From assembly GCA_002269645.1 (NCBI GenBank), contig NIVC01002137.1:94609-158608 (forward strand): a stretch of 64,000 bases of DNA, in the 5' to 3' direction. The notes beneath the pieces were generated by a model. The model searched no databases, was not told the DNA's origin, and worked only from the letters and a program-made list of their open reading frames with translations. This DNA is from Macrostomum lignano (Eukaryota). A program made the translations under genes and the position numbers. Positions 1 through 53,545 of this stretch are shown here, piece after piece (the stretch's first letter is position 1; every line of letters begins with the position of its first letter).

Positions 1-1215
1 CATCATGAGAAATCCCAATCATCATGAGAAATCCCAATCATCAGCATGAGAAATCCCAATCATCATGAGAAATCCCATTCAATATGAGAAATCCCAATCA
101 TCAATATGAGAAATCCCAATCATCATGAGAAATCCCATTCAATATGAGAAATCCCAATCATCAATATGAGAAATCCCAATCATCAATATGAGAAATCCCC
201 AATCATCAATATGAGAAATCCCAATCATCATGAGAAATCCCATTCAATATGAGAAATCCCAATCATCAATGTGAGAAATCCCAATCATCAATATGAGAAA
301 TCCCAATCATCATGAGAAATCCCATTCAATATGAGAAATCCCAATCATCAATATGAGAAATCCCAATCATCAATATGAGAAATCCCCAATCATCAATATG
401 AGAAATCCCAATCATCATGAGAAATCCCATTCAATATGAGAAATCCCAATCATCAATGTGAGAAATCCCAATCATCAATATGAGAAATCCCAATCATCAT
501 GAGAAATCCCATTCAATATGAGAAATCCCAATCATCAATATGAGAAATCCCAATCATCAATATGAGAAATCCCAATCATCAATATGAGAAATCCCAATCA
601 TCATGAGAAATCCCATTCAATATGAGAAATCCCAATCATCAATGTGAGAAATCCCAATCATCAATATGAGAAATCCCAATCATCAATATGAGAAATCCCA
701 ATCATCAATATGAGAAATCCCAATCATCAATGTGAGAAATCCCAATTATCATCATGAGAAATCCCAATCATCTGCATGGGAAATCCCAATCATCTGCATG
801 GGAAATCCCAATCATCTGCATGGGAAATCCCAATCATCTGCATGGGAAATCCCAATCATCTGCATGGGAAATCCCAATCATCTGCATGGGAAATCCCAAT
901 CATCTGCATGGGAAATCCAAATCATCATGAGAAATCCCAATCAGCATGAGAAATCCCAATCAGCATGAGAAATCCCAATCAGCATGAGAAATCCCAATCA
1001 GCATGAGAAATCCCAATCAGCATGAGAAATCCCAATCATCAGCATGGGAAATCCCAATCATGAGAAATCCCAATCATCAGCATGGGAAATCCCAATCATG
1101 AGAAATCCCAATCATCAGCATGAGAAATCCCAAGCATCATGAGAAATCCCAGTCATCAGCATGAGAAATCCCAGTCATCAGCATGAGAAATCCCAATCAT
1201 CATCATGGGAAATCC
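1..1215. repeat. Minisatellite, ~19-25 bp units (CATGAGAAATCCCAATCAT[CAAT]); probably intronic, upstream of the TRIM exon
   Basis: Tandem units run from the window start up to the acceptor CTGCAG at 1224-1229. A CCCC variant recurs 187 bp apart (191 and 378), indicating higher-order duplication. Confidence 0.95.
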
Positions 1216-1229
1216 CACGCCCCCTGCAG

Positions 1230-4081
1230 CCGGCCAGCCGAGCTCTACTGTCCCCAGTGTGAGGTGGCCTATTGCACCGACTGCCTTCGTCGCTACCACC
1301 CGAGCCTCGGGCCCTTGCGTCGACACGCCGTAGTCCAACTAGCCGGAGACGCCGACGTTCTCAGACGCCTTAGGCGCTCCCTCCGCTATCGCCGAGGCCA
1401 GCAGCAGCCGCCGCAACCGCTGCCGCCTTCTTCGAGTGTCAACGGCGAGACGTCGAGGAGTCGCCAAAGTCAGCGCGGCGTCGGCGCCGGCGGCAGCCTC
1501 CCGCTGTGCCCCCGACATCCCGCCAACCAGATTCGACTGCACTGCGCCACCTGCGACGTCGGCGTCTGCACCGACTGTCTCGCCGTCGACGACGACAGTC
1601 CCGAATCGATATCTGCGTCGATGTCGAGATCGGCCCCGTCGACATCGACGCCAGCTGGCCGACACGCCGGCCACTCGTTGATCACACTGACAGCGGCAGC
1701 CGAAGCTCGACGTGCCAAGTGTCGACAGCTTGGCGAGAAAGCCGCCGCCCTAGCGCTGGAAGTCGACAGAGAGGCGACATCGACCAGACGGGCAAGGGAC
1801 CGGCTCAGGTCGACGATTGTCGAGGCCCGCCGCAGTCTGGAGCTGCAGAGTCGGCGGGCGGCGCTGGATTTGGCGGCGGCTGTCCGGGCGGTCCGGGCGG
1901 ACGCGGAGGACCGGGCGGCGGCGCTTGAAGATGCCGCGGAGGCGGCGGCGCGGCTGGAGAGACAGCTGGCTGCTCAGGTGAATGACGGGTCATGGATGTT
2001 GAATGACTGGTCATGCATATTGAATGACCGTTTATGGATATTGAATGACTGGTCATGCATATTGAATGACCGTTTATGGATATTGAATGACTGGTCATGC
2101 ATATTGAATGACCGTTTATGAATATTGAATGACTGGTCATGCATATTGAATGAACGTTTATGAATATTGAATGACTGGTCGTGGATATGAAATGACTGGT
2201 CATGGATGTGGAATGACTGGTCTTGCATACTGAATGACAGGTCATGCATATTGAATGACGGTTCATGCATATTAAATGACGGGTCATGGATACTGGATGA
2301 CGGGTCGTGCATATTGAATGACGGGTCTTGCATACTAAATGACGGGTCTTGCATACTGAATGACTGGTCATAGAGAATAAATAACTATAGTCATGGATAC
2401 TGAATGACTGATCTTACTTATTAAATGACGGGTCATATTCTCCAGAGTCGACTCTCCTCCCGGCTGACCCGAGTGTCCCGCCAGCTGCTGCAGTCGTCAG
2501 CCTCGCCGCCATCATCAGCCGGGACTTCCCTAGCAACCGATGCAGCCACTGACCAGACAGACCTGCAGGTGTCCGCCTACCTGGCCAGCCTTCGCCAGTT
2601 CGACCGCTGCTCCGACAAGGCGAGCTCGCTGGCCGACTCTGGCGCCGCTCTGCGCCTCGGCTTGGAGTCTCGGGCGGCCGACGCCAAGCAGCTGCCTGCA
2701 GAGTTCAACGACCGGCTGCGGCGACACCTGGCGGAGGTCTGGCTGCTGGCGGCGCCGCCGAGAGCCGGGCAGGAAGCTGACGAGGAGCGCAGGTGAGACG
2801 CGAGTGAGGTGCTGGCGGGACGGGACGTCTTGTGCTCTCTTATGGCTCTTCCCCTCCGTTTTCCCGCTTTCCCCTCCGTTTTCCCGCTTTCCCCTCCGTT
2901 TTCCCGCTTTCCCCTCCGTTTTTCCGCTTTCCCCTCCGTTTTCCCGCTTTTCCCTCCGTTTTCCCGCTTTCGCCTCCGTCTCCCCGCTTTCCCCTCCGTC
3001 TCCCGCTTTCCCCTCTGTCTCCCCACTTTCCCCTTTGTCTCCCCGCTTTCCCCTCCGTCTCCCCGCTTTCCCCTCCGTCTCCCGCTTTCCCCTCTGTCTC
3101 CCCGCTTTCCCCTCTGTCTCCCCGCTTTCCCCTCCGTCTCCCAAATTTTCCCTCCGTCTTCTTACTTTCCCCTCCCTCTCCCCACTATTCTTTCCGTTTC
3201 TCCCAACTTCTCTCCATCCTTCCATCTTCCCGTCTCTTCTGTCTCCCTGTTTCCCTTAATCCCTCAATTGCGACACGGAAGCTATCATATTCCCATTCAA
3301 TCAATCCCGCGTGCTTTGCAGCTGCCGGCCACCTGGAACTGCCGGAAGCATTCCCGAATCTCGTCCTGATACCGCTTCAACTACTCATAGTAATGGCGGC
3401 GGCGGCGGCGGCACTGGCAAGCCGTCGGCTGCGCAGGCGCTGTTCCCGCGCGAGGCGTCCACTTGGGGCTTCTCAACCGCCGTGTTCAGCCCCGACTGCC
3501 CAGTCTCTAATGGGACTTCGTGGACGATTCTGATTGGCTGGGGCCAGCACCAGCACCTGCATCAGCAGCCTCAGTGGTCGGATATTCTCGCTTCTACGGG
3601 CGTGTCAGAGCGTCCAATTTTGTCTGCTGGGAATTTTAATTCTTCTTCAAAGTCTTCTTCTTTGGCGCAGAAGCAGCAACAGCAGCAGCGACTGTTGCTT
3701 GGCGACTGCGGATTCGGACTGATTGTGACTGAGCGCTGCGTCGCTTTCATTGCTAGAGGCGGAGAGCTGGCCCAGCAGCCTGTCTGCCGGCTGCCGCTAT
3801 CGCCCGCTTCTTCTTCTTCTAGTAGCAGCAATGGCAGCGTTTCCTTGCGGGTTCGCATCCGCCTGTCCCTGCCGCCGCACGGCCCGGCTGCACTGGCTTA
3901 TGAAATCTCCGAACAACAACAGCAGCAGCAAGACTCTTCTTCTAGTAGCAGCAATGCTTCGCTTAGCGGAGTTGAACTGCTTGGCACGAGGTGCAGCAGC
4001 CTGTACCCTGTGCTGTGCGTCACCAGTCGAGTTCGAGTGCAGGTGCTCGAGCAGCCAGCTGCCGCGTTGGTTGCTAGGTGA
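1230..4081 (+). CDS. TRIM9/TRIM67/MADD-2-like protein, 3' part (B-box1, B-box2, coiled coil, divergent SPRY-like C-terminus); 5' exons lie outside the window
   Basis: Exons 1230-1977, 2446-2792 and 3322-4081 have GT-AG sites and matching phases (0, then 2). YCPQCEVAYCTDCLRRYHPSLGPLRRH matches the TRIM9-type B-box1 pattern. CPRH...HCATCDVGVCTDC...H..H is B-box2, followed by an Ala/Arg-rich coiled coil. The last exon ends in LYPVLCVTSRVRV, reminiscent of a SPRY last strand. Confidence 0.75.
1978..2435. repeat. Intronic 21-bp minisatellite (TTGAATGACTGGTCATGCATA)
   Basis: The tandem array begins at the donor GT (GTGAATGACGGGTCATG) and fills the intron. Confidence 0.9.
2848..3190. repeat. Intronic 20-bp pyrimidine-rich minisatellite (TTTTCCCGCTTTCCCCTCCG)
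   Basis: Tandem units decay toward 3190. Confidence 0.9.
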
Positions 4082-8359: not shown

Positions 8360-11086
8360 CTGTCAAAAGAGGCGCCAGTATTGAGTAAAAAGAGGCGCCA
8401 GTATTGAGTCAAAAGAGGCGCCAGTATTGAGTCAAAAGAGGCGCCAGTATTGAGTCAAAAGAGGCGCCAGTATTGAGTCAAAAGAGACGCCAATATTGAG
8501 TCAAAAGAGACGCCAATATTGAGTCAAAAAAGGCACCAATATTGAGTCAAAGGAGGAGCCAACCAATGAGTCAAAAGAAGCGCCAGTATTGAGTCAAAAG
8601 AGACGCCAATATTGAGTCAAAAAAGGCACCAGTATTGAGTCAAAGGAGGAGCCAACCAATGAGTCAAAAGAAGCGCCAGTATTGAGTCAAAAGAGACGCC
8701 AATATTGAGTCAAAAAAGGCACCAATATTGAGTCAAAGGAGGAGCCAACCAATGAGTCAAAAGGAGCGCCAGTATTGAGTCAAAAGAGGCGCCAATATTG
8801 AGTCAAAAGAGACGCCAAAATTGAGTCAAAAGAGGGGCCAGTATTTAGTCAAAAGAGACGCCAATAGTGAGTCAAAAGAGACGCCAATATTGAGTCAAAA
8901 GAGGCCCCAGTATCAAGTCGAAAGAGACGCCAATATTGAGTCAAAAGAGACGCCAATATTGAGTCAAAAGAGACGCCAAAATCGAGTCAAAAGAGGCGCC
9001 AATATTGAGTCAAAAGAGGCGCCAGAATTTAGTCAAAAAAGACGCCAATATTGAGTCAAAGAGGAGCCAACCAATGAGTCAAAAGAGGCGCCAGTATTTA
9101 GTCAAAAGAGGCGCCAGTATTGAGTCAAAAGAGGCGCCAATATTGAGTCAAAAGAGACGCCAATATTGAGTCAAAAGAGGCGGCAGTATTTAGTCAAAAG
9201 AGTCGCCAGTATTGGGTCGAAAGAGGCGCCAGAATTTAGTCAGAAGAGACGCCAATATTGAGTCAAAAGAGACGCCAATATTGAGTCAAAAGAGACGCCA
9301 ATATTGAGTCAAAAGAGGCGCCAGAATTTAGTCAAAAGAGGCGCCAGTATTGAGTCAAAAGAGACGCCAATATTGAGTCAAAAGAGGCGCCAACCAATAT
9401 GAGTCAAAAGAGGCGCCAGTATTGTGTCAAAAGAGGCGCCAGTATTGAGTCAAAAGAGGCGCCTGTATTGGGTCAAAAGAGACGCCAATATTGAGTCAAA
9501 AGAGACGCCAATATTGAGTCAAAGGAGGAGCCAACCAATGAGTCAAAAGAGGCGCCAGTATTGAGTCAAAAGAGGCGCCAATATTGAGTCAAAAGAGACG
9601 CCAATATTGAGTCAAAAGAGGCGCCAACCAATATGAGTCAAAAGAGGCGCCAGTATTGTGTCAAAAGAGGCGCCAATATTGAGTCAGAAGAGGCGCCAGT
9701 ATTGAGTCAAAAGAGGCGCCAATATTGAGTCAGAAGAGGCGCCAGTATTGTGTCAAAAGAGGCGCCAATATTGAGTCAGAAGAGGCGCCAGTATTGAGTC
9801 AAAAAAGGCACTAATATTGAGTCAAAGGAGGAGCCAACCAATGAGTCAAAAGAGGCGCCAGTATCGAGTCGAAAGAGACGCCAATATTGAGTCAAAAGAG
9901 ACGCCAATATTGAGTCAAAAGAGACGCCAATATCGAGTCAAAAGAGGCGCCAGTATTGAGTCAAAAGAGACGCCAATATTGAGTCAAAAGAGACGCCAAT
10001 ATTGAGTCAAAAGAGGCGCCAATATTGAGTCAAAAGAGACGCCAATATTGAGTCAAAAGAGGCGCCAGTATTGTGTCAAAAGAGGCGCCAGTATTGTGTC
10101 AAAAGAGGCGCCAATATTGAGTCAGAAGAGGCGCCAGTATTGAGTCAAAAAAGGCACCAATATTGAGTCAAAGGAGGAGCCAACCAATGAGTCAAAAGAA
10201 GCGCCAGTATTGAGTCAAAAGAGGCGCCAATATTGAGTCAAAAGAGGCGCCAGTATTGTGTCAAAAGAGGCGCCAATATTGAGTCAGAAGAGGCGCCAGT
10301 ATTGAGTCAAAAAAGGCACCAATATTGAGTCAAAGGAGGAGCCAACCAATGAGTCAAAAGAGGCGCCAGTATTGAGTCAAAAGAGGCGCCAATATTGAGT
10401 CAAAAGAGGCGCCAGTATTGAGTCAAAAGAGGCGCCAGAATTTAGTCAAAAAAGACGCCAATATTGAGTCAAAAGAGACGCCAATATTGAGTCAATAGAG
10501 ACGCCAATATCGAGTCAAAAGAGGCGCCAATATTGAGTCAAAAGAGGCGCCAGAATTTAGTCAAAAAGACGCCAATATTGAGTCAAAGAGGAGCCAACCA
10601 ATGAGTCAAAAGAGGTGCCAGAATTTAGTCAGAAGAGACGCCAATATTGAGTCTAAAGAGACGCCAATATTGAGTCAAAAGAGGCGCCAGTATTGGGTCA
10701 AAAGAGGCGCCAGAATTTAGTCAGAAGAGACGCCAATATTGAGTCAAAAGAGACGCCAATATTGTGTCAAAAGAGGCGCCAATATTGAGTCAGAAGAGGC
10801 GCCAGTATTGAGTCAAAAAAGGCACTAATATTGAGTCAAAAGAGACGCCAGAATTTAATATAAAAGGCCCCAGTATCAAGTCAAAAGAGGCGCCAGTATT
10901 GAGTCAAAAAAGGCGCCAGTACTGAGTCAAGAGACGCCAGTACTGAGTCAAAAAGAGGCGCTTGAATTTAGTCAAAAAGGCCCCAGTAGCAAGTTAAAAC
11001 AGACGCAAATATTGAGTAAAATGAAGCGCCATTATTGAATCAAAAGAGGCGCTAATATTGAGTCAAGAGGCGCCAATATTGAGTCA
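8360..11086. repeat. 2.7-kb 23-bp satellite (TTGAGTCAAAAGAGGCGCCA[G/A]TA); most units carry TGAGTCA
   Basis: Continuous tandem array with an interspersed variant unit GGAGGAGCCAACCAATGAGTCA. It ends ~120 bp before the ATG at 11210. Confidence 0.95.
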
Positions 11087-11209
11087 GAAGCTGAGCCCAA
11101 AGTCAAGTCTCAAATTCGCAGTTTTATCAGTAAACTGTCTATCGCTGAACTTCCGCTCACAGAGCGCCCTCACAAGCAGCTGCCGACAGCAAGAAACTTC
11201 GCGGCCGCA

Positions 11210-13456
11210 ATGAGCAGCCGATTTGCAGGCCGTTGGTCGACTTCGCCGCCCAAAATTCGCCTCTCTCTGCTGCTCCTGGTGATGTTTGGATTCTTTGCCG
11301 GAACAGCTCAAGCTATGTGGGTGCAGGAGTACGAGCGGTTGGCCTACTCGATTCCCGAGCCGCAAGGTCAGAAATTTTACACAAGTTGTTGTGCGTGACT
11401 GACAGAGCAGCGAAATGTAATTTCGCCGTAGCTATAAGGGGCGCCAATATTTAGTGTCTCGGTTGGTGTCCTTGTCCAACAGCGAAATGTGAGATTGCTG
11501 ATTGGTTTATTTAATTTCTGACTCTTAGTTGGCGCCCCAGTCTCTTATTTGGCGCCCCAGTCTCTTATTTGGTGCCCCAGTCTCTTAGTTGGCGCCCCAG
11601 TTTCTTAGTTCGCGCCCCAGTCTTTTAGTTGGCGCCCCAGTCTCTTAGTTGGCGCCCCAGACTCTTATAGTCGGCGCCCCAGTCTCTTATTTGGCGCCTC
11701 AGTCTCTTAGTTGGCGCCACTGTCTCTTAGTTGGCGCCACTGTCTCTTAGTCGGCGCCCCTGTCTCTTGGTTGGCGCCACTGTCTCTTGGTTGGCACCCA
11801 GTTGTCTCATGGTTGGCGCCCAGTTGTCTCATGGTTGGCGCCCAGTTGTCTCATGGTTGGCGCCCAGTTGTCTCATGGTTGGCGCCCAGTTGTCTCATGG
11901 TTGGCGGCCGTCTATTGGTTGGCCCTGAACATATGTAGTTCTGTCATAAAGTTTTTCATTTTTTCCTTAATGATCCTTTATGTCACAGACCAACAGCCAG
12001 GGGGGGGGCTACATGCCGTATCTCGAATTTAGTTTTTGCCACGGGGTCAATAAACCCGACAGAACGAGCCCCTGTTCACTAGACAACTTGATCAGCATTG
12101 AGTGCACTGTGCAAATAAACGACGGTTATGCGATTAATTGCCTCAACTGATGGAGCCGCGGAAAGTTTTGTCAATCATCTCACCAAGCAGCCGGTGCAAT
12201 ATTTTTTACTTAATTGGCCAAGCAAAAATGTTTCATTCTAGGTGGGTGGCAATGTCCTTTTGGTTGCTCTGCCATTGAAACTCGAACTGGGAGCTTGTGT
12301 CGGTGTGGAGAATTGCTAACTGGGGAATTGCTGGCTGAAGAATAACTCACTGGGGAAATGCTGACTGGGGAATTGCTGTCTGGGGAATTGCTGACTGGGG
12401 AATTGCTGACTGGGAAATTGCTGTCTGGGGAATTGCTGTCTGGGTAAGAACTGACTGTGGAATTGCTGTCTGGGGAATTGCTACCTGGGGAATTGCTGGC
12501 TGAGGAATAACTCACTGGGGAATTGCTGGCTGAGAAAGAAGTGACTGGGGAATTGCTGTCTGGGGAATTGCTGGCTGAGGAAGAATTGACTGGGTAATTG
12601 CTCACTGAGGAAGAAGTGACTGGGGAATTGCTGGCTGAGGAAGAACTGACTGGGGAATTGCTGGCTGAGGAAGAACTGACTGTGGAAAGAATTGACTGGG
12701 GAATTGCTGTCTGGGGAATTGCTGACTGGGAAAGAATTGACTGGGGAATTGCTGGCTGAGGAAGAAGTGACAGGGAAATTGCTGTCTGGGGAATTGCTGT
12801 CTGGGGAATTGCTGACTGGGGAATTGCTGTGTGGGGAATTGCTGACTGGGGAATTGGTGGCTGGGAAATTGCTGACTGGGAAAGAATGGACTGGGGAATT
12901 GCTGTCTGGGGAATTGCTGACTGGGAAAGAATTGACTGGGGAATTGCTGGCTGAGGAAGAAGTGACTGGGGAATTGCTGGCTGAGGAAGAAGTGACTGGG
13001 AAATTGCTGTCTGGGGAATTGCTGACTGGGAAAGAATTGACTGGGGAATTGCTGGCTGAGGAAGAAGTGACTGGGGAATTGCTGGCTGAGGAAGAAGTGA
13101 CTGGGAAATTGCTGTCTGGGGAATTGCTGTCTGGGGAATTGCTGACTGGGGAATTGCTGTGTGGGGAATTGCTGACTGGGAAAGAATTGACTGGGGCATT
13201 GCACTTGTGTAGTTCAATAAATGCGTGCTAAACTGACTAAATAATGTTAAATTTTACAGCAATCCACCGCCGCTCTCAAACAGCTGCACCAGGCGAGGTC
13301 ATATCCTACTTTCCCTGCTCCTACGGCGGCATCCCATATCCGGTTTCCTGCGGCTCCGGCGCGGGGCCAAGAGTGTTCCGTTCTAAGAAAGGATTTCTAG
13401 TCTGTGTGTGCCTCTGCTCAGCCCAGGCCGCCGGGCCCAACTGCCTGCCTGACTGA
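11210..13456 (+). CDS. Putative secreted cysteine-rich prepropeptide, 117 aa, family unrecognised
   Basis: Exon 1 is 11210-11366 (CAAG|GTCAGA, phase 1). Exon 2 is 13260-13456 (TTTTACAG|, upstream CTGACTAA branch-like motif, phase 1). The join gives a hydrophobic signal LSLLLLVMFGFFAGTAQA, then a propeptide ending HRR, then a mature region with 6 Cys. AATAAA lies at 13548-13553. Confidence 0.65.
11522..11905. repeat. Intronic 20-bp minisatellite (TCTCTTAGTTGGCGCCCCAG); reverse complement of the family at 50445-53545
   Basis: Tandem units. GTCTCTTGGTTGGCGCC is the reverse complement of GGCGCCAACCAAGAGAC. Confidence 0.9.
12310..13197. repeat. Intronic 15-bp minisatellite (GGGGAATTGCTGACT and variants)
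   Basis: Tandem 15-mers; source of the false ORFs 12210-13217, 12602-13204 and 12692-13231. Confidence 0.93.
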
Positions 13457-13547: not shown

Positions 13548-13553
13548 AATAAA
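13548..13553 (+). promoter_or_regulatory. Candidate polyadenylation signal of the peptide gene
   Basis: AATAAA ~90 nt after the stop codon at 13456. Confidence 0.45.
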
Positions 13554-13621
13554 TATTGATTCCCTCTCCCCTATTTAGCCTGCGTTGTGTCTTAGTGAAT
13601 TTTGTGTTAAAATATGCTATA

Positions 13622-14586
13622 AATGGGAGATTAATATGTTTACTCAAAATGGCAATTATGGGAGATTAATATGTTTACTCAAAATGGCAATTATGGGAGA
13701 TTAATATGTTTACTCAAAATGGCAATTATGGGAGATTAATATGTTTACTCAAAATGGCAATTATGGGAGATTAATATGTTTACTCAAAATGGCAATTATG
13801 GGAGATTAATATGTTTACTCAAAATGGCAATTATGGGAGATTAATATGTTTACTCAAAATGGCAATTATGGGAGATTAATATGTTTACTCAAAATGGCAA
13901 TTATGGGAGATTAATATGTTTACTCAAAATGGCAATTATGGGAGATTAATATGTTTACTCAAAATGGCAATTATGGGAGATTAATATGTCTGCTCAGAAT
14001 GCCATAAATGGGAGATTAATATGTCTGCTCAAAATGCCATAAATAAGAGATTAATATGTCTGCTCAGAATGCCATAAATGAGAGATTAATATGTCTGCTC
14101 AGAATGTCATAAATGGGAGATTAATATGTCTGCTCAGAATGTCATAAATGGGAGATTAATATGTCTGCTCAGAATGTCATAAATGGGAGATTAATATGTC
14201 TGCTCAGAATGCCATAAATGGGAGATTAATATGTCTGCTCAGAATGTCATAAATGGGAGATTAATATGTCTGCTCAGAATGCCATAAATGGGAGATTAAT
14301 ATGTCTGCTCAGAATGTCATATATGGGAGATTAATATGTCTGCTCAGAATGCCATAAATGGGAGATTAATATGTCTGCTCAGAATGTCATAAATGGGAGA
14401 TTAATATGTCTGCTCAGAATGCCATAAATGGGAGATTAATATGTCTGCTCAGAATGTCATATATGGGAGATTAATATGTCTGCTCAGAATGCCATAAATG
14501 GGAGATTAATATGTCTGCTCAGAATGTCATAAATGGGAGATTAATATGTCTGCTCAGAATGTCATAAATGGGAGATTAATATGTCT
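13622..14586. repeat. 35-bp minisatellite with two sequential subtypes
   Basis: ATGGGAGATTAATATGTTTACTCAAAATGGCAATT up to ~13985, then ATGGGAGATTAATATGTCTGCTCAGAATG[C/T]CATAA. Confidence 0.93.
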
Positions 14587-15252
14587 GTGTTTTGAAGTTG
14601 AAGACAAATGAAAAATAAGTTTGAAACTTTACAAATATTTAGGGCATGAAGATATTCATAGCAAATAAATTTGGTGCATTTCAATTCACATTGGTTGTTG
14701 GGACGCTAATTCAACTTTGAAATAAATTTATTTCACTTAGCAAATGCAAATTAAAGTTAAAAAAGCAGATTACATGGCAATGGGCACTATTAGAAAAACA
14801 AAAATGTTTTTGGAATGGATTTAAACTTGCTGGTTAAATTTTGATAGGTAATAAAACTTGTGCGCCACAGTTAATGCATACACAGAAACGCATATTACTA
14901 CTAGTGGCTAGGGGACGAGTAGTATAGTCTTCGTTAAGAAGACGATGTCAATAAAAAACTAAAAAAAACACGATGAAGAATGTATTTTTAATGCAAAAAT
15001 ATTGTAATTAAACATACCATAGCACAGCTTCTCCCCTATGGTTTTGTTGACAAAATAAGCTTTAGTAAAAAATCAAGCTCACGATGCGAGTTCAGCTAAG
15101 ATCAATGGAAACTTTGCAGTTTCCTAGTAACTATTTGAAGGCTTTTAATTAATCAAGTTTCTTATTGTAAGCAGATTAAAGCTAAAGGATAAATCAGTAT
15201 AACAAAGAAAAGGACGGCATAAAAGAGAGGTGACAAGTCAAGAAGCGGTCAG

Positions 15253-21906: not shown

Positions 21907-24900
21907 TCACAACTCGTCTCTCTGCACCAGCACTTGATCCGCAGGCTTCGGTTGTCCTCCGCCGCTGGGGTCCGTCAGCTCCGCAGCCTTCCCAGTCCAA
22001 TCGTTGAATGCCAACAGGGCCGCATTTCGTCCAGCAATGGCCGACATCTCCATAGCGGAGGCTGCCAACTCGATGGGGCTGGTGTGGTACAGCCCGTCAG
22101 CCAGTACAAAGCTGGCATTGATCGACAGTCCCCGACGATAAAGCGGATAAGCCAGCCAGCTCACACTGTGAGTAGACTCAACATTAGTAAACAGTTGATT
22201 AACCTGCTCAGCAGTGAGTACTCGCTGTGAGAACACTTTATAAACATTGTCGGATGGATTTTTATCAACATCGTGTTGATAGCCGATGCTGTTAAAGTCC
22301 AGCGGCGATGCAGGCGTGCCCGTGAGCACGCTGTACTCAGATTGGCGGCTTCTCAGGCCCAGCCAGTCGTGATTGAGTCGGCCTTTGACAAATGTTGCAA
22401 CCGTGGTCTGGTAGTCAACCCGGGGAACTTTAACGTCTTTTATCTGAATTGGGGGTTATGAGTAGGCTCATTGATCAGGATAATAACCCTTCGGCGACAT
22501 CTTCCCGTAACCGACGCTGACCGAAGCGCGCGAATACTGTACGCAGACAAGCACTCACAGACACGCTCACACAGGGTGCACACAGCAGCCTTGACTTTCT
22601 AATCGTCAGGCATGTGCATTCTCTGCGTCTTGAGGGCTGACTCTCATGGGATTCACAATTGATCACAAGAGGGATCACAATGGATCACAAGTGGATTCAC
22701 AATGGATCACAAGTAGATTCACAATGAATCACAATAGGATTCACAAGAATTAAGAAGATTCACAATGGATCACAAGAGGATTCACAATGGATCACAAGAG
22801 GATTCACAATGAATCACAAGAGGATTCACAATGAATCACAAGAGGATTCACAAGAATTAAGAGGATTCACAAGAATTAAGAGGATTCACAAGAATTAAAA
22901 GAGGAATCAAAAGAATTAAAAGAGGATTCACAAGAATTAAAAGAGGATTCACAATGAATCACAAGAGGATTCACAATGGATCACAAGAGGATTCACAGTG
23001 AATCACAATGAATCACAAGAGGATTCACAGTGAATCACAATGAATCACAAGAGGATTCACAGTGAATCACAATGAATCACAAGAGGATTCACAGTGAATC
23101 ACAATGAATCACAAGAGGATTCACAGTGAATCACAATGAATCACAAGAGGATTCACAGTGAATCACAATGAATCACAAGAGGATTCACAGTGAATCACAA
23201 TGAATCACAAGAGGATTCACAGTGAATCACAATGAATCACAAGAGGATTCACAGTGAATCACAATGAATCACAAGAGGATTCACAATGAATCACAATGAA
23301 TCACAAGAGGGTTTAGAATGAATCACAAGAGGGTTCACAATGAATCACAATGAATCACAGCATGATTCACATGTACTCTGATTTGAAAGTTATGAAAGGC
23401 TATTGCAACAAAGCATCCATTTAAAGTAGGGAATAAACCTATACATCTCTCCGACAATTTTACCTCAATATTAAAGTGCTGACTCGGTGGCACAGTCAGG
23501 ATCACTTGATCATATTGCTCAACCACTGTTGACCTGCTGGCATCCGTGCTGGTCACAGTCCAACCTTCGCGATCCTTAGCAATCTGAGTAACTCGACTAT
23601 TGAGCAGCAGCCTGACCTTGCCAGATTCTGCTTCATCCGCTTGCTGAGACTGAGCCAGCCTGCTAAGCAGATTAGCCACAATCAGCCGGTTGCCGCCTCT
23701 GACCGACCAGAGACCGCCTTCGGCGCCAGCCAACGACACTGCGCCAACGAAGCCGTGAATGCTCACATTCTGACCGTAGTTGTTGCGCATCGCCCCAGCA
23801 ACCAGTTCGTTGATGAACTCGGAGCTGAAGCCGCTGGACTCCAGCAGCTGGAGTGATTTAATTAAATAATTTGTTTACTTTTGATTCTGCGCCTTTGATC
23901 AAGCAGTGCTTGGGAATCTGCCCTTCATTTACCCTCTGTTACTTGAATCTACCCTTCATCTACCCTCTGTTACTTGAATCTACCCTTCATCTACCCTCTG
24001 TTACTTGAATCTACCCTTCATCTACCCTCTGTTACTTGAATCTACCCTTCATCTACCCTCTGTTCCTTGAATCTGCCCTTCATCTACCCTCTGTTACTTG
24101 AATCTGCCCTTCATTTACCCTCTGTTACTTGAATCTACCCTTCATCTACCCTCTGTTACTTGAATCTGCCCTTCATCTACCCTCTGTTACTTGAATCTGC
24201 CCTTCATCTACCCTCTGTTCCTTGAGAATCTGCCCTTCATCTACCCTCTTTTCCTTGAATCTGCCCTTTATCTACCCTCTGTTCCTTAAATCTGCCCTTC
24301 ATCTACCCTCTGTTCCTTGAATCTGCCCTTTATCTACCCTCTGTTCCTTGAATCTGCCCTTCATCTACCCTCTGTTCCTTGAGAATCTGCCCTTCATCTA
24401 CCCTCTGTTCCTTGAATCTGCTCTTCATCTACCCTCTGTTCCTTGAGAATCTGCCCTTCATCTACCCTCTGTTCCTTGAATCTGCCCTTTATCTACCCTC
24501 TGTTACTTGAGAATCTGCCCTTCATCTACCCTCTGTTCCTTGAATCTGCCCTTCATCTACCCTCTGTTCCTTGAGAATCTGCCCTTCATTTACCCTCTGT
24601 TCCTTGAATCTGCCCTTCATCTACCCTCTGTTCCTTGAATCTGCCCTTCATCTACCCTCTGTTCCTTGAGAATCTGCCCTTCATCTACCCTGTTCCTTGA
24701 ATCTGCCCTTCATCTACCCTCTGTTACTTGAGAATCTGCCCTTCATCTACCCTCTGTTCCTTGAATCTGCCCTTCATCTACCCTCTGTTCCTTGAATCTG
24801 CCCTTCATCTACCCTCTGTTCCTTGAGAATCTGCCCTTCATTTACCCTCTGTTCCTTGAATCTGCCCTTCATCTACCCTCTGTTCCTTGAATCTGCCCTT

Positions 24901-27094
24901 CATCTACCCTCTGTTCCTTGAATCTGCCCTTCATCTACCCCCTGTTCCTTGAATCTGCCCTTTATCTTCCCTCTGTTCCTTGAGAAACTGCCCTTCATCT
25001 ACCCTCTGTTCCTTGAATCTACCCTTCATCTACCCTCTGTTACTTGAATCTACCCTTCATCTACCCTCTGTTACTTGAATCTACCCTTCATCTACCCTCT
25101 GTTCCTTGAATCTGCCCTTCATCTACCCTCTGTTACTTGAATCTGCCCTTCATTTACCCTCTGTTACTTGAATCTACCCTTCATCTACCCTCTGTTACTT
25201 GAATCTGCCCTTTATCTACCCCCTGTTCCTTGAATCTGCCCTTCATCTACCCTCTGTTCCTTGAGAATCTGCCCTTTATCTACCCTCTTTTCCTTGAATC
25301 TGCCCTTTATCTACCCTCTGTTCCTTGAATCTGCCCTTCATCTACCCTCTGTTCCTTGAATCTGCTCTTCATCTACCCTCTGTTCCTTGAGAATCTGCCC
25401 TTCATCTACCCTCTGTTCCTTGAATCTGCCCTTTATCTACCCTCTGTTACTTGAGAATCTGCCCTTCATCTACCCTCTGTTCCTTGAATCTGCCCTTCAT
25501 CTACCCTCTGTTCCTTGAGAATCGGCCCTTCATTTACCCTCTGTTCCTTGAATCTGCCCTTCATCTACCCTCTGTTCCTTGAATCTGCCCTTCATCTACC
25601 CTCTGTTCCTTGAGAATCTGCCCTTCATCTACCCTGTTCCTTGAATCTGCCCTTCATCTACCCTCTGTTACTTGAGAATCTGCCCTTCATCTACCCTCTG
25701 TTCCTTGAATCTGCCCTTCATCTACCCTCTGTTCCTTGAATCTGCCCTTCATCTACCCTCTGTTCCTTGAGAATCTGCCCTTCATTTACCCTCTGTTCCT
25801 TGAATCTGCCCTTCATCTACCCTCTGTTCCTTGAATCTGCCCTTCATCTACCCTCTGTTCCTTGAATCTGCCCTTCATCTACCCCCTGTTCCTTGAATCT
25901 GCCCTTTATCTTCCCTCTGTTCCTTGAGAAACTGCCCTTCATCTACCCTCTGTTCCTTGAATCTGCCCTTCATCTACCCTCTGTTCCTTGAGAATCTGCC
26001 CTTCATCTACCCTCTGTTCCTTGAGAATCTGCCCTTCATCTACCCCCTGTTCCTTGAATCTGCCCTTTATCTTCCCTCTGTTCCTTGAGAAACTGCCCTT
26101 CATCTACCCTCTGTTCCTTGAATCTGCCCTTCATCTACCCTCTGTTCCTTGAATCTGCCCTTCATCTACCCCCTGTTCCTTGAATCTGCCCTTTATCTTC
26201 CCTCTGTTCCTTGAGAAACTGCCCTTCATCTACCCTCTGTTCCTTGAATCTGCCCTTCATCTACCCTCTGTTCCTTGAGAAACTGCCCTTCATCTACCCT
26301 TGTTCTTTGGGAATCTACCCTTCATTTACCCTCTGTTCCTTGAATCTGCCTCTCTACCCCCTAAAATAATAATTTCCCAGTGTAAAAACTGCAAGTTAAA
26401 AGCCAGATCCCACCTTCTCAATGGTCTCAGTCGCCATAGCCGGGAAGCTGTCAGACATGGCAGACAGAAGACCCAGCACATTGGTGTAAGCTTGCCCAGC
26501 ATTCTGTCTAGCATAGACACGGCCGAAATCTTCCATCATGCCGGATACAAATTTTCTTAGCTGAACAAAAGCAGCTAATCCGTACCTATGCAAAAGCTGC
26601 ACCATCTTAACCAGGTACCAATCGCTAGTGTCCAACACAGTGTCTCGGCCATTGAACACAGCTAATCTAGTCTCTTCTCCGTGATACAGTCTGCTCAATC
26701 CAAGCACATCTGCGAAATGTCGCATATACAAATTCTTATCGTGTATAATTGATCCGCCAGATTCGAACTTGCGACCATCGAAATTAGCTACACCAAGACG
26801 GCCACCAACTAATGTAGCAGAGGACTCGTCCGTGACAATGTCCATTCTACAGTTGGAGCCGAATTTGTCTCTAAGGAAATAGGCGGCACTGGCCGCGGCT
26901 ACTCCGCTACCAATGATGGCAATACGGGGACCCGGCCGCTTCAAGTCTCTGCTTTTATCTTCACTCTGAGCTGCCTGAACCGACGCTGATGTGCCAGAGG
27001 AGAGCAGCGCCAAACTCGGCAGCAATAGGCAGGAGGTCAAGGTGAGCTGATGAGGCAGTCTCAGTGCCCAGTGTCTTGCAGACAGGCAAAGCAT
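21907..27094 (-). CDS. PCYOX1: Prenylcysteine oxidase 1 family flavoprotein, 533 aa
   Basis: Exons 27094-26414, 23847-23464 and 22443-21907, all phase 0 with GT-AG. It has a signal peptide and the FAD-binding motif RIAIIGSGVAAASAAYFL. Family motifs include FESGGSIIH, GAMRNNYGQ...HGFVGAVSLAG, LWSVRGGN, YQTTVATFVKGRLN and IELAASAMEMSAIAGRNAALL. The C-terminus is RDEL. Confidence 0.92.
22645..23365. repeat. Intronic GAATCACAA[T]/GAGGATTCACA minisatellite (~22 and 32 bp periods)
   Basis: Tandem units in PCYOX1 intron 2. Confidence 0.9.
23905..26350. repeat. 2.4-kb intronic 31/33-bp satellite (TTGA[GA]ATCTGCCCTTCATCTACCCTCTGTTCC)
   Basis: Fills almost all of PCYOX1 intron 1; variant blocks recur, implying block duplication. 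Confidence 0.95.
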
Positions 27095-31850: not shown

Positions 31851-33752
31851 GCAAATTCAGCGACAAACAAATTTGGCCAGAGAAATTTAACATGGACAAA
31901 TTGGGCAAAAGCAAATTCGGCAAGAATCTAAGCAAAGTTGGTGATGTCTTGGTCTTGGTGATAGCAGCATTTGCCGTGCCATCACAGGTGCGTACCCGTC
32001 TACCCCTTACGAGGGGCTGAACACTATCCTTAACCTGCCTCCGCTTCACCTATTTATTAGGGTGGAGGCTATGAAGTCTGCCTCCCGGCTTATCAGAGAT
32101 AAAACGTTAAATAACGCACCCTCTGGCTTTATGCCAATGAAAACATTAATCCCGCATATGGACTTTGTCCGCCGCGACCTCAACAACATCCACATGGACC
32201 TGGGCAATGTGGATAGTCGACCTCCCGCCCTCAACATCAGGAGGGGCTTCAAGACCGCCATCCCTGGCCGAGACAATCTTCCGCTGGATGTCGGTGTGAA
32301 CCGGCGCAGCCAGGGCATTCACTGCTTCACCGACGGCTCGCTGTTCAACGGCCGCGCTGGAGCGGGTATTGCCATTTTCCACGAGGGTAAGATGCTTTTC
32401 CAGGAAAGTCTGCACCTCGGTGAGAACACCTCAGTTTTCCAAGCTGAAATTTGCGCCATTGAGCAGTGTGCCCAGCAACTGCTTCAGGCGAACATTAATA
32501 ACTTTGACATTAATTTCTACACTGATAGCCAAGCTGCTATTAAGGCCTTAACCACTGAGAATATCTCCGCTGCTACAGTATCTCAATGCCACCGCAGTGT
32601 GCAATCTCTCTCAGTCCTTAACAGGATTAGAATTATCTGGACACCTGGTCACAGCAACATCCTGGGCAACGAGCTCGCGGACTCTCTCGCCAAGGAGGGC
32701 AGCAACCCAGACGGCAACCACTGTCTGATGAGGCTACCCACCCCCAGGTCGCAAGTCACCCGCCATATCAACAGGTGGCTCCATCAGCAGCACCAGCTCC
32801 ACTGGAACAGCTGCACCGAGTACAGGCAGAGCCGCTCTGCCATGCCTAACCTGAACAGGAAAGTCTCTGATTATCTGATTTCGCTTAACAGAACCGACCT
32901 CAGGGAGATGTGCATGGTCCTAACCGGCCATGGATTCTTCCAGAGACATATATCGTTGCAAACCGGTTGCCCTCCCACCTGTCCTTTCTGTGGCATAGGA
33001 GAGGAGACCGCGGAGCATCACGTCACCTTCTGCCCTTACTTCAACAAGGCGCGGCACAAATACCTCGGCCACCCCAGCGGATGGACGAGCTGACCACCCC
33101 GGACAATATCCGTGACCTGCGCGCCTTCGTCCGGGACTCCGGCCGGATGAGGGTCGCCGATGCCTCCACTGCCAACCTGCCGACTACTGGCGGGGACTGG
33201 GCGCACCCCCAGGGTTAATCCTTGTGCTCTTTTACCTTGGGGTTGCGATAGGGGCCTCGCGGCCTATTCGCGGCGCCTGCACCCCCCATCAGTAGTAAGT
33301 AAGTAAGTGGTGATGTCTTTTTATAGCTAAAGACAATTAAGTTAAAGCAAACTACATATAATAAAGGCCTAAGTCCCTGACATTGTAACCAATAGAAGAA
33401 CCTTATTAGACATACAAGAAAATTGATTCTCTTGTTTTTTCTAAGTCTCAAAGGTTTTTGCTTATTACGAGGCTGCCGAACCTTAAATTAACAAACATTT
33501 CTTAGAAAGGACTTTCAATACTTACAAGGATAAATGATAGATAATTGATAAAACAAACTAAATTAAAAGGGAAAGCTAATATGCATTGAAGAATACCATT
33601 GACCATTGTACTAAATGAATTATCCAAATTATACAGAATTTTTTCCTTGTATTAATTTTTGCTAAATTTGCCTGGATTGTTGCCAAATTTGTTTTTGCCA
33701 AATTGGTCCATTGTGAATCTTTGTTGCCAAATTTGTTTGTTGCCAAATTGGT
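31851..33752. mobile_element. Foldback/TIR element with ~86-bp imperfect inverted arms of ~15-bp units, interrupted by a LINE fragment
   Basis: 31851-31936 aligns colinearly with the reverse complement of 33667-33752 (CAAACAAATTTGGC ... ATGGAC.AATT.GGCAAAA.CAAATT.GGCAA). Confidence 0.6.
31951..33307 (+). mobile_element. 5'-truncated non-LTR retrotransposon (I-group: R1/LOA/Tad1 type) with end of RT-linker, RNase H and CCHC knuckle
   Basis: The frame is open from 31951 ([23 protein letters not shown]). RNase H motifs are FTDGS, VFQAEI, YTDSQAA and [13 protein letters not shown], followed by [16 protein letters not shown]. There is a (TAAG)n tail and a 12-bp TSD TGGTGATGTCTT at 31939-31950 and 33308-33319. 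Confidence 0.92.
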
Positions 33753-38616: not shown

Positions 38617-41050
38617 TTAACAGTTGAGTGGCCTTGAGATATCGCTGAACACAGTCGCTGGTTTGTAGTTGTGAGGCATGAGTAGGCACAGGTGAAAGCT
38701 GCGATACTTGACGCGGTCACTAATGCTTGCCTGTCCCGCGGTGTCGCTGATCATCCGCATTGCGGCGTTGGCTCGGCCGTGGCTTTGATCCGGCCGCACC
38801 ACCAAGCCGAAGGTCGGCCGTGGTACTCCAACAAGCAGCTGCAGTTTTCGCCGATTGCTAGCCGTCTGGGCGGTCTCAGCTGATGACTGCGCTATCGCTA
38901 GAGTAGACGGCGAGTTGACGGTGGCACCGCAAGTGGCCGCGTCCGAGGCGACCCCAGAGCCGCAACCAGGCGGCAAGACTTCGATGCTGCACTGGCAGCA
39001 CTTTTCAATCTTTCTTAAGCAGTTGGTCTTCATCAGCGATCTGCTCTTCTCTGTCACCGGGGCGCGCGCTTCAAAAGAAAGTACGCGCAAATCTTTGACG
39101 TACTGATAAAACTTTTTATAGTCGTTAAGCGGCACGCAAATAGTCAAGTTAAGCGGGCAGGTGATTGCGCCCTCGGGGTAGGCATCACGATTGAGCACGC
39201 GATGGATTTGAGTTAACTCTAGGATCAGGCAACCTTGAGGATGAGCGCGCAGCAGGTCAGAGTACTGTCTCGAGCGGATATACAGGAGACGCAAACGCAG
39301 CAGGTTAAGCATTGGCACAGGACCACAATTAGCCAACCGATTGATCAGGCGTTGAAGATCTGAACGCAGTCGCGCAGACAGCACGCTGGAATCCTGCGCC
39401 AGCTGGTAGAGATACAACCTAGCGAGCACCGAATCCACAAGGCTCAGCGTCGGCTCCCGGTACTCGGCCGCCGTCTGCGTTTCTACAAGGTACGCGGTTC
39501 GCTCTTCTGAAGGTACCATCAGCTTGGCAACTTCAATTAGATCCCAAGTGGTCTCCGACTCGCTGTATAAACGCTTCACACCGTTGCTCTCGGTTCGAAG
39601 TTTCTGCGCGCTATCGAACTTCTCTTTAATGGCCGTCACCCGGCGCTCCAAGCTACGATTCGCGCAGCCGCTACAGGCCCGACGCCACCACTCAAACAGA
39701 GCGTTAAATGCCGTCTTGAACTCCTGGTTGTCAACCCGTTCATTGGGTCGAAAGCTAGATAGTAGACCTTCGAGGCGCTCCATGAACTGAATTGAAAAAG
39801 CCTCTTCCGGTTCGATCAACGAGTTGACAGTAGACTCAATGGCCGCTTCCTGGTTGTTTTCAGCAACTTCGGTTGTATGCCGGGGATCTTCATCGAAGCG
39901 TTCGGTGCCTTCATTGTCCGAGACAGGCTCCATGGCAGCCTGTGGTTCCAATAAAAAGTCTGGCTCCAAAAAGGAAGCGGGTGGTGGCGGCAACCGTGAA
40001 GGCGTGTCACCTCGAACGACGTCTCTGACGCATTCCTCATCGTCGCTATCCAACCCATCGGTAGCTGGCGTCGGGCTGGCTGGTCTCGGAATGTTATCGC
40101 CGCTGTTACTATTGCCGCATCCAACGGAGCCTACGCTGCCGGCCAGGCAGGTAAAACAGGCCAGCATGTCGTCGAACAGAGTGACAACCGTCTTGCGTAG
40201 TGAGCCATCACCGACTCCGTCGCTAGGGCTACATGCTACGAAGCCCATGACTGTTGTTGCCAGGCTCTGCATCCTATCGAGCACCAGTTGACGCCGACGT
40301 TCAACTGTCCGGGCGTAGCGACCGATCGCAGCGGTGAGGACCGCAGCTCGTCGAGCCGCATATTTAGAAACATTACTGAGGCGTCCCGAGCTACTTCCTC
40401 CGGCCGAAGAAGAACTGAGATCCCGGTCCACTTGCTCGGCGAATGTCATCAGCAGACTGGACAGTTCGGCATCGTCAACTTCGGCGAGGGTGGCGTCCGT
40501 GTCCAGGAACAGGCGCATCTGCAGGTGGATCGAGCGCAAGTCGGCGAGACCCTGGCGCAGCAGCAGCTCCGAGTCGCTTGTCGACTATGGATAAAGGAAA
40601 CTTTTCGTTAATGATGCTTTTCTTTCCCATGTTTGTAACTAAAACAAGTCTACATGCAAAAATTGCATGACTTTAGGATTCAATAGTGCAACATTCTTCT
40701 GTATTAGCTGGTAAAAGCTTTTTGCTTAAAATAAAAAACACTCACAGAATGATTCCCAGCCAGCAGGTTAAACATTTCGAGCATCTCCGGCTGGCTGAAT
40801 GGGAACGCCGTTCGAAATTGCAGCCGAAAAACTCTGTCGCCGAATTCGTAAACAAACGGATGCAACGATTCAGTGATTGCTGCAGCATCTATGCATTGAT
40901 TAGCCGGCTTCGTACAATTGCTTTGTCTCCGGGTTTGTTCTTCTGCTTTGGCTACTTGGTCCAGCATTGAACCAATAAGACAGCAGAGCTTATTTTCTTC
41001 GTCAAAGTCTTCTTCTGGGGCTGGGTATGTCGATGTCGCTGGTGGCAGCG

Positions 41051-50444: not shown

Positions 50445-53400
50445 AAGAGACAGGGCCGCCCACCAAGAGACAGGGCCGCCCACCAAGAGACAGGGCCGCC
50501 CACCAAGGAGACAGGGCCGCCCACCAAGAGACAGGGCCGCCCACCAAGAGACAGGGCCGCCCACCAAGAGACAGGGCCGCCCACCAAGGAGACAGGGCCG
50601 CCCACCAAGAGACAGGGCCGCCCACCAAGAGGCAGGGGCGCGCACCAAGAGACAGGGGCGCTAACCAAAGAGACAGGGGCGCCCACCAAGAGACAGGGGC
50701 GCCCACCAAGAGACAGGGGCGCGCACCAAGAGACAGGGGCGCCCACCAAGAGACAGGGGCGCTAACCAAAGAGACAGGGGTGCCCACCAAGAGACAGGGG
50801 CGCCCACCAAGAGACAGGGCCGCCCACCAAGACACAGTGGCGCGCACCAAGAGACAGGGGCGCCCACCAAGAGACAGGGGCGCCCACCAAGAGACAGGGC
50901 CGCCCACCAAGACACAGTGGCGCGCACCAAGAGACAGGGGCGCCAACCAAGAGACAGGGGCGCTAACCAAAGAGACAGGGGCGCAAACCAAGAAACAGGG
51001 GCGCTAACCAAAGAGACAGGGGCGCCAACCAAGAGACAGGGGCGCCCACCAAGAGACAGGGGCGCTAACCAAAGAGACAGGGGCGCCAATCAAAGAGACA
51101 GGGGCGCTAAGCAAGGAGACAGGGGCGCTAACCAAGAGACAGGGGCGCCCACCAAGAGACAGGGGCGCTAACCAAAGAGACAGGGGCGCCAACCAAGAAA
51201 CAGGGGCGCCAACCAAGAAACAGGGGCGCTAACCAAGGAGACAGGGGCGCCAACCAAGAGACAGGGCCGCCCACCAAGACACAGGGGCGCCCACCAAGAG
51301 ACAGGGGCGCTAACCAAAGAGACAGGGGCGCCAATCAAAGAGACAGGGGCGCTAAGCAAGGAGACAGGGGCGCTAACCAAGAGACAGGGGCGCCCACCAA
51401 GAGACAGGGGCGCTAACCAAAGAGACAGGGGCGCAAACCAAGAAACAGGGGCGCTAACCAAAGAGACAGGGGCGCCAACCAAGAGACAGGGGCGCTCACC
51501 AAGAGACAGGGGCGCTAACCAAGGAGACAGGGGCGCCAACCAAGAGACAGGGCCGCCCGCCAAGACACAGGGGCGCCCACCAAGAGACAGGGGCGCTAAC
51601 CAAAGAGACAGGGGCGCCAATCAAAGAGACAGGGGCGCTAAGCAAGGAGACAGGGGCGCTAACCAAGAGACAGGGGCGCCCACCAAGAGACAGGGGCGCT
51701 AACCAAAGAGACAGGGGCGCAAACCAAGAAACAGGGGCGCTAACCAAGGAGACAGGGGCGCCAACCAAGAGACAGGGGCGCGCACCAAGAGACAGGGGCG
51801 CCCACCAAGAGACAGGGGCGCTAACCAAAGAGACAGGGGCGCCAATCAAAGAGACAGGGGCGCTAAGCAAGGAGACAGGGGCGCTAACCAAGAGACAGGG
51901 GCGCCCACCAAGAGACAGGGGCGCTAACCAAAGAGACAGGGGCGCCAACCAAGAAACAGGGGCGCCAACCAAGAAACAGGGGCGCTAACCAAGGAGACAG
52001 GGGCGCCAACCAAGAGACAGGGCCGCCCACCAAGACACAGGGGCGCCCACCAAGAGACAGGGGCGCTAACCAAAGAGACAGGGGCGCCAATCAAAGAGAC
52101 AGGGGCGCTAAGCAAGGAGACAGGGGCGCTAACCAAGAGACAGGGGCGCCCACCAAGAGACAGGGGCGCTAACCAAAGAGACAGGGGCGCCAACCAAGAA
52201 ACAGGGGCGCTAACCAAGGAGACAGGGGCGCCAACCAAGAGACAGGGCCGCCCACCAAGAAACAGGGGCGCCCACCAAGAGACAGGGGCGCTAACCAAAG
52301 AGACAGGGGCGCCAATCAAAGAGACAGGGGCGCTAAGCAAGGAGACAGGGGCGCTAACCAAGAGACAGGGGCGCCCACCAAGAGACAGGGGCGCTAACCA
52401 AAGAGACAGGGGCGCCAACCAAGAAACAGGGGCGCTAACCAAAGAGACAGGGGCGCTAACCAAAGAGACAGGGGCGCTAACCAAGAGACAGGGGCGCGCA
52501 CCAAGAGACAGGGGCGCCCACCAAGAGACAGGGGCGCTAACCAAAGAGACAGGGGCGCCAATCAAAGAGACAGGGGCGCTAAGCAAGGAGACAGGGGCGC
52601 TAACCAAGAGACAGGGGCGCCCACCAAGAGACAGGGGCGCTAACTAAAGAGACAGGGGCGCCAACCAAGAAACAGGGGCGCTAACCAAAGAGACAGGGGC
52701 GCCAATCAAAGAGACAGGGGCGCTAAGCAAGGAGACAGGGGCGCTAACCAAGAGACAGGGGCGCCCACCAAGAGACAGGGGCGCTAACCAAAGAGACAGG
52801 GGCGCCAACCAAGAAACAGGGGCGCTAACCAAGGAGACAGGGGCGCCAACCAAGAGACAGGGCCGCCCACCAAGACACAGTGGCGCGCACCAAGAGACAG
52901 GGGCGCTAACCAAAGAGACAGGGGCGCCAATCAAAGAGACAGGGGCGCTAAGCAAGGAGACAGGGGCGCTAACCAAGAGACAGGGGCGCCCACCAAGAGA
53001 CAGGGGCGCTAACCAAAGAGACAGGGGCGCAAACCAAGAAACAGGGGCGCTAACCAAGGAGACAGGGGCGCCAACCAAGAGACAGGGGCGCGCACCAAGA
53101 GACAGGGGCGCCCACCAAGAGACAGGGGCGCTAACCAAAGAGACAGGGGCGCCAATCAAAGAGACAGGGGCGCTAAGCAAGGAGACAGGGGCGCTAACCA
53201 AGAGATAGGGGCGCCCACCAAGAGACAGGGGCGCTAACTAAAGTGACAGGGGCGCCAACCAAGAAACAGGGGCGCTAACCAAGGAGACAGGGGGCGCCAA
53301 CCAAGAGACAGGGCCGCCCACCAAGACACAGGGGCGCTAACCAAAGAGACAGGGGCGCCAACCAAGAAACAGGGGCGCTAACCAAGGAGACAGGGGCGCC

Positions 53401-53545
53401 AACCAAGAGACAGGGGCGCCCACCAAGAGACAGGGCCGCCCACCAAGACACAGGGGCGCCCACCAAGAGACAGGGGCGCGCACCAAGAGACAGGGGCGCG
53501 CACCAAGAGACAGGGGCGCTAACCAAAGAGACAGGGGCGCCCACC
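50445..53545. repeat. 3.1-kb 20-21 bp GC-rich satellite (CCAAGAGACAGGGGCGC[CC/TA]A) with higher-order blocks
   Basis: Tandem units with a recurring variant order (CCAATCAAAGAG, CTAAGCAAGGAG, CTAACCAAGAG, CCCACCAAGAG). Confidence 0.95.

Follow-up and report, generated by a model that had tools for sequence, protein, structure and literature searches.

A Two-Exon Gene of Macrostomum lignano for a Small Secreted Peptide With a Divergent EGF-Like Cysteine Domain

The Gene and Its Surroundings

The 64,000-nucleotide stretch of Macrostomum lignano DNA analyzed here (the window) is eukaryotic and dense in tandem arrays. On its forward strand, two exons at 11210-11366 and 13260-13456 join to encode a prepropeptide of 117 aa. 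In the list of open reading frames each half has a short entry of its own (62 aa at 11210-11398; 70 aa at 13244-13456), and a preliminary description of this DNA had proposed that they are phase-matched exons of one gene; joining them reproduces the peptide of that description exactly. The features it had listed are likewise all present in the spliced product, namely the cysteine spacing C-x10-C-x17-CxCxC-x8-C, an RR pair at residues 56-57 and a KK pair at residues 95-96.

Exon 1 (11210..11366, +) contains the ATG, the signal peptide and propeptide residues 1-17, and it ends 1 base into codon 53; its product equals the N-terminus of UniProt A0A1I8G223. The intron that follows (11367..13259, +) is 1893 nt long, of the GT..AG type and in phase 1, with the donor CAAG/GTCAGA and the acceptor TTTTACAG/CA (the slash marks the junction). 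Exon 2 opens with the end of the propeptide, (A)IHRR (13260..13273, +), in which the RR convertase-type site occupies 13268-13273, and it continues through the predicted mature peptide (13274..13453, +; 60 aa, ~6.1 kDa, pI 8.3) to a TGA stop codon read in the sequence at 13454..13456 (+). Within the mature part, the six-Cys core lies at 13316-13444 (+; aa 72-114) and carries an EGF-type tail, CLCSAQAAGPNC, at its 3' end. A candidate polyadenylation signal, AATAAA, can be read at 13548..13553 (+), 92 nt past the stop.

The 1.9-kb intron is nearly all satellite DNA. One array, with a unit of 20-22 bp, spans 11522-11923; the other, with a unit of 15/30 bp, spans 12306-13202 and occupies the 3' half of the intron. 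The long ORFs found in the intron on either strand (e.g., 12210-13217, minus) are translations of repeats. The 20-bp satellite at 11522-11923 (+), with the unit GTTGGCGCCCCAGTCTCTTA, has a relative of one repeat family with it on the other strand, 40 kb distant, in an array of ~3 kb at 50646-53544 (-). When up to 3 mismatches are allowed, this unit gives 95 matches vs. 0 expected, and translation of the distant array accounts for the long "ORFs" at 50-53 kb. Tandem repeats also border the gene on both sides. Upstream, ~90 copies of a 23-bp unit (9000-11090) stop 120 bp before the ATG, and downstream, ~28 copies of a 35-bp unit (13619-14587) begin 160 bp after the stop. A GGCGCC core is common to the upstream 23-bp unit and the intron unit.

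A tblastn search of the 64-kb window with the peptide found no second copy. Other features of the window include three or more exons of a gene for a prenylcysteine lyase/oxidase-like flavoprotein at 21907-27094 (-; Pfam Prenylcys_lyase, E down to 8e-31) and cadherin-repeat exons at 55613-56908 and 58209-59111 (+), which start with a signal peptide, end with a transmembrane-like stretch and probably belong to one protocadherin-type gene. The ORF at 32062-33093 (+) carries RNase H and RT-like domains and is probably the remnant of a retrotransposon, and a TRIM-like ORF with two B-box zinc-finger domains at 1183-2121 (+) continues into a tandem repeat. The longest non-repeat ORF of the window, an unbroken 640-aa frame at 38617-40539 (-), has no Pfam match.

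Copies and Paralogues in M. lignano

The gene model itself is not new, as its exact product has already been deposited in UniProt under the name "Secreted protein" (A0A1I8G223, here P0004), identical to the spliced product at 117 of 117 residues. A search of 5.8 billion clustered proteins matched only proteins of M. lignano. Among them are two more copies of 120 and 121 aa, both with ~88% identity and both covering the exon junction. M. lignano also has a more divergent paralogue (NCBI PAA47331/PAA49465, BOX15_Mlig026996g1/g2), whose Cys-rich part is ~61% identical. The NCBI protein of this paralogue can be rebuilt exactly from three exons of its locus (L001). Its last intron is also a phase-1 GT..AG intron, one residue upstream of an EKR site, and the window intron, three residues upstream of RR, is found in the equivalent place. 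A chimeric model of the paralogue (P0006) carries the UniProt name "EGF-like domain-containing protein."

The spliced match exceeds what chance would produce, since the product is 100% identical to a deposited model, two copies at ~88% identity extend across the junction, the last intron of the paralogue agrees in place and phase, and the six-Cys frame recurs in three other lineages. Taken together, these comparisons indicate that the M. lignano locus is a real two-exon gene for a small secreted peptide.

The Mlig_3_7 models in GenBank come from RNA-seq-guided transcript assembly (PMC5730564), and one of the two M. lignano paralogue groups, Mlig026996, is transcript-backed through this RNA-seq-based annotation (PMC5730564). 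Only UniProt's ML2-derived set contains the product of the window gene; the GenBank Mlig_3_7 proteins do not. Before GenBank submission, transcripts that overlap annotated repeats were taken out (PMC5730564), and it is plausible that the window gene is missing from the GenBank set because of this removal and its repeat-filled intron. A search of the full text and supplements of M. lignano papers for the identifier Mlig026996 returned no expression data, and the M. lignano literature that was consulted yielded no information on expression, localization or phenotype for either the gene or its paralogue.

Precursor Architecture and Proposed Processing

The N-terminus consists of a charged, basic n-region followed by a 12-residue hydrophobic core, LSLLLLVMFGFF (mean Kyte-Doolittle 2.69), and a signal peptide is predicted at aa 1-35 (nt 11210-11314), with cleavage after AQA. 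These features bear out the earlier proposal of a secreted prepropeptide. The dibasic site that had been pointed out ahead of the Cys-rich part also holds up, as basic counterparts of the RR pair stand at the corresponding position in the paralogue (EKR) and in two relatives from other lineages, L005 (QKR) and L006 (FKR). More generally, KR or RR is found 8-16 residues upstream of the first Cys in four of the five lineages. The lineage represented by L003 and L004 has no dibasic site ahead of the domain, and its processing may differ. The linker of this wastewater-metagenome relative is rich in His and Gln (HHHH, QQQQQQQ) and is not an acidic propeptide.

From this architecture, a route of maturation can be proposed. 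Signal peptidase would cut after AQA, and a proprotein convertase would cut after RR or KR, thereby removing a 22-aa propeptide that in the window protein ends in RR; in some relatives, the peptide would be trimmed further at a C-terminal RKR or RRR. The product would be one chain of ~6.1 kDa with three disulfides and a pI of ~8.3. The window protein stops 3 residues past the last Cys and has no transmembrane segment. Across the family, the mature peptides have a pI of 8.3-9.1 and a net charge of +1.4 to +4.7.

Relatives in Other Lineages and a Conserved Cysteine Frame

When 1.84 billion representatives were searched exhaustively with a profile, the only matches were M. lignano proteins, one chimeric model and one further protein (P0008), whose cluster mates come from one SRA assembly and one JGI metagenome; JGI 3300056599 is the metagenome of a wastewater nutrient-removal plant. 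A profile word search added P0011, and a single-sequence metagenome scan added L006, while a scan of JGI metagenomes with the family alignment gave no confirmed match. A repeat protein of 948 aa (P0007), which had an E-value of 5e-4 in the profile search, was rejected as a low-complexity repeat match that does not have the Cys frame.

The relatives are listed as prokaryote-style ORF calls; their contigs are animal, with PHYHIP and PEX11 among the neighboring genes. For L004 and L005, spliced models could be built in which a signal-peptide exon is followed by a GT..AG phase-1 intron and then by a linker and the domain. L006 begins at a phase-1 acceptor, with FKR preceding the domain and RKR after it. 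On its contig (JAAUYG010003231.1), at L006 304-444, RKR and then a tail of 36 residues, SHGAMLRENAYSPNALESWRSRNAWSDLFNRPRAQ, come after the Cys domain. This tail may be released as a second peptide; an extension of this kind is not present in the M. lignano genes.

The frame C-x8-10-C-x17-18-C-x-C-x-C-x5-G-x2-C is invariant in all six family sequences, and so are the motifs F-[PA]-C, G-x-G-P-[RK] and G-P-x-C. By sequence comparison, the gene is thus a member of a small uncharacterized family that comprises two M. lignano paralogue groups and at least three other metazoan lineages. All members share a signal peptide and a linker, usually have KR or RR just ahead of the domain, and encode the domain in an exon that follows a phase-1 intron.

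The C-terminal domain is also the part of the precursor that changes least. When the M. lignano copies are compared, 7 of the 52 prepro residues differ but just 1 of about 50 in the domain. A comparison of L003 with L004 gives identity at 162 of 165 nt of the domain, with three substitutions of which one is non-synonymous, and the whole aligned stretch, which is mostly non-coding, has ~86% identity with many indels. This pattern of substitutions shows purifying selection on the C-terminal domain, which is thus the selected product.

Likeness to EGF Domains

EGF-like domains hold six conserved Cys in ~35-60 residues and are described by the PROSITE EGF_1 signature C-x-C-x5-G-x2-C. In their canonical form the first four Cys are spaced approximately C-x4-8-C-x3-6-C-x8-13-C, the six Cys pair 1-3, 2-4 and 5-6, and the modules are typically preceded by a phase-1 intron. 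The mature part of the family has six Cys conserved in all six sequences, as an EGF-like domain demands, and a regular-expression search finds the EGF_1 signature in every member. The best PDB sequence matches of the family profile are isolated EGF repeats, 5ky5_B (EGF(+)) and 5l0t_B (E ~0.009), in which vCLCpkeaqGPeCkd is aligned with TCLCPPGFTGPNCED of the family; the tail of the relatives takes the form C-P-x-x-W-x-G-P-x-C. In hhalign, comparison with a 12-sequence EGF alignment (typed by hand and including EGF, TGF-alpha, HB-EGF and NRG1) gives a probability of 77% over 14 columns only, and the N-terminal two-thirds of the domain (40 residues) fail to align.

Domain searches place the family below the level at which EGF domains are called. 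Pfam EGF_2 is sub-threshold in three of the six members (best E 0.036) and EGF_Teneurin reaches 0.25 in one, and none of the six family domains passes a Pfam cut-off. The window protein on its own matches nothing in Pfam at E<=10, and as a single query against PDB sequences it gave a chance match only. The spacing of the first four Cys, C-x8-10-C-x17-18-C-x-C, is not that of a canonical EGF domain. In the reading preferred here, the C-terminal third is an EGF-type sub-domain, C-x-C-x5-G-x2-C, and the Cys that normally lies 8-13 residues ahead of "C4" sits just two before it, giving CxCxC.

The window peptide and the L005 peptide, two members that are ~35% identical, were modeled with AlphaFold (pLDDT 76 and 77, respectively); the models are of moderate confidence, with an alignment of six sequences underneath. 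Neither contains a helix, and both are all-beta, running from an N-terminal strand through a central hairpin to a tiny hairpin at the C-terminus; at that confidence, the layout is compatible with EGF. When these two models were compared with the PDB by Foldseek, the best E-values were 0.5 and 2.0, with no EGF match and nothing significant. Foldseek is weak on tiny disulfide-rich domains. The preliminary description had looked to structure prediction and Foldseek to place the peptide; the first supplied consistent all-beta models, and the second found no significant match to any solved structure. On the basis of the models, the mature domain would most likely form a single-chain, all-beta mini-protein with three disulfides, in which the second strand of the central hairpin bears the CxCxC ladder and the last disulfide closes a small C-terminal loop.

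With the EGF-like superfamily, the family thus shares a small secreted six-Cys domain, the last three Cys and the Gly, the upstream phase-1 intron and, in the models, a predicted central beta-hairpin and small C-terminal loop. It differs in its first half, which does not align, and in its third Cys, which comes two residues before the fourth rather than at the start of the hairpin. We therefore call the domain a divergent EGF-like variant rather than a canonical EGF domain or an EGFR ligand, a label chosen because the tail matches EGF but the Pfam thresholds, the canonical spacing and Foldseek all fail. The preliminary description had recognized no family. This is correct insofar as no curated family claims the domain in Pfam, PDB sequence or Foldseek searches, but the tail is an EGF-type signature.

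Comparison With Insulin and Relaxin

The preliminary description had further considered that cleavage at RR and KK could leave disulfide-linked 2-Cys and 4-Cys chains, as in an insulin/relaxin-like hormone. Insulin/relaxin peptides combine a helical 2-Cys B chain (C-x11-C, then a conserved Gly) with a 4-Cys A chain (CC-x3-C-x8-C); basic cleavage sites flank their C-peptide, and their fold consists of three helices. They share with the window protein the number of Cys (six), basic sites in the prepropeptide and C-x8-C at the end. The window protein does contain both RR and KK, its cysteines could formally be divided 2+4 with C-x8-C at the end, and the KK (13385..13390, +) falls in an exposed turn of the model, where it would be accessible. 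This KK, which the preliminary description had proposed as the inter-chain cleavage site, is however present only in near-identical copies, and the relatives have RNR, TYGR, NKGR or KSGR in its place, so that a second cleavage site is not conserved. There is also no C-peptide that could be excised. The model of the window peptide places KK at a hairpin turn (mature residues 37-41) between the strands RVFR and LVCVCLCS. The interval between the first two Cys is 8-10 residues long and Pro/Gly-rich instead of a helix of fixed length, and neither AlphaFold model, both being all-beta, has a helix at all. Pfam Insulin matched neither the whole precursor nor any of the six family domains, and hhalign against an insulin/IGF/relaxin/INSL3 alignment typed by hand gave a probability of 0.04% (E 0.91). 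The reservation already attached to the proposal, that CxCxC and a Pro-rich first part are unlike insulin, was well founded, as CxCxC-x8-C, rather than CC-x3-C, is found in all members.

Possible Functions of the Peptide

The explanation that best accounts for the observations as a whole is that of a gene for a secreted prepropeptide, with a one-chain, EGF-tailed domain that belongs to a small family and has a speculative role as a ligand. We give this reading a probability of roughly 0.7. In its functional part, the mature peptide would be an extracellular ligand, growth-factor-like or hormone-like, for a conserved endogenous partner. This is speculative but preferred over a fast-evolving toxin, antimicrobial or seminal-fluid effector on the grounds of strong constraint on the mature part, few gene copies and basic processing sites on either side of the domain. 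The ligand role is argued from this pattern of conservation and from the architecture of the precursor.

The alternative that fares best, although we consider it improbable, is an effector of defense or offense released from gland cells, i.e., an antimicrobial peptide, toxin or protease inhibitor. A signal peptide, an acidic propeptide and a dibasic site ahead of a Cys-rich peptide are also typical of defensins and venom peptides, and the window precursor follows this order, ending in a small cationic disulfide-rich peptide with the pI and charge given above for the family. The same layout of signal peptide, short and often acidic propeptide, KR or RR and C-terminal disulfide-rich peptide is seen in convertase-processed prepropeptides such as invertebrate defensins and conopeptide precursors. 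The charge of the family is modest, however, and its mature domain is the most conserved part of the precursor, not the most variable, in contrast to the hypervariable mature regions of that type of precursor. Only two paralogue groups exist, with no expansion of the gene family. Searches of Pfam, PDB sequence and Foldseek gave no match to known toxin, antimicrobial peptide or inhibitor families, the Cys framework matches none of the precursors of this type that were found, and we know of no convertase-processed Cys-rich peptide that shares it.

A bona fide soluble EGF-receptor ligand is a less probable identity still. Ligands of the EGF/TGF-alpha/neuregulin type carry the canonical EGF motif in full, in most cases within a transmembrane precursor, and use an Arg just before the last Cys. 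The window peptide has the EGF-type C-terminal signature and is a secreted form with no transmembrane segment, but it has neither the full EGF motif nor a transmembrane precursor, and the residue preceding its last Cys is N or E in the family, not Arg. Only the last 14 columns align with EGF ligands, the N-terminal two-thirds remaining unaligned, with C-x8-10-C-x17-18-C-x-C vs. C-x7-C-x4-5-C-x10-13-C, and Pfam EGF stays under threshold. Secreted EGF-type ligands with no transmembrane segment do occur in flatworms, and 8 EGFRs are present in M. lignano (PMC4914847). Two of the flatworm EGFR ligands, Smed-egf-6 as well as Smed-egf-7 (PMC4914847), share with the window peptide a signal peptide, a single EGF-type module and the lack of a transmembrane segment, but they carry a canonical EGF domain that domain searches recognize and the window peptide does not. 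The family appears to be missing from the published survey of EGF ligands.

Comparably doubtful is a reproductive or structural gland product, for example in seminal fluid (prostate), eggshell or cement, adhesive or mucus. The glands of M. lignano express many small lineage-restricted secreted proteins, and among 1.84 billion representatives the window protein has no named relatives beyond M. lignano. Reproduction-related genes of Macrostomum are reported to evolve rapidly (PMC7336406), whereas the domain described here is under strong constraint and is common to distant lineages at ~35% identity. Finally, the two-chain insulin-like hormone, rejected for an unconserved KK that lies in a hairpin turn, for the lack of a helix and for the hhalign probability, has next to no chance of being correct, and the main practical outcome of the analysis is accordingly negative in that there is no new insulin-like hormone at this locus.

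Significance

At present, the ligand role being speculative, the gene stands as one more lineage-restricted small secreted Cys-rich protein, an unnamed model in UniProt. A bolder view, to which we attach a tentative minority probability, higher than that of any single alternative above, is that the family constitutes an undescribed class of invertebrate peptide signal. Its members would be EGF-derived mini-domains in which one disulfide has moved to create the CxCxC ladder, and they would be released by prohormone convertases and act on a conserved receptor. Macrostomid flatworms would share them with one or more other groups of small aquatic metazoans. If the peptide is a signaling molecule, it would represent a new ligand family for a transgenic, regeneration-competent flatworm model and, at the same time, a natural EGF-type scaffold with a shifted disulfide.
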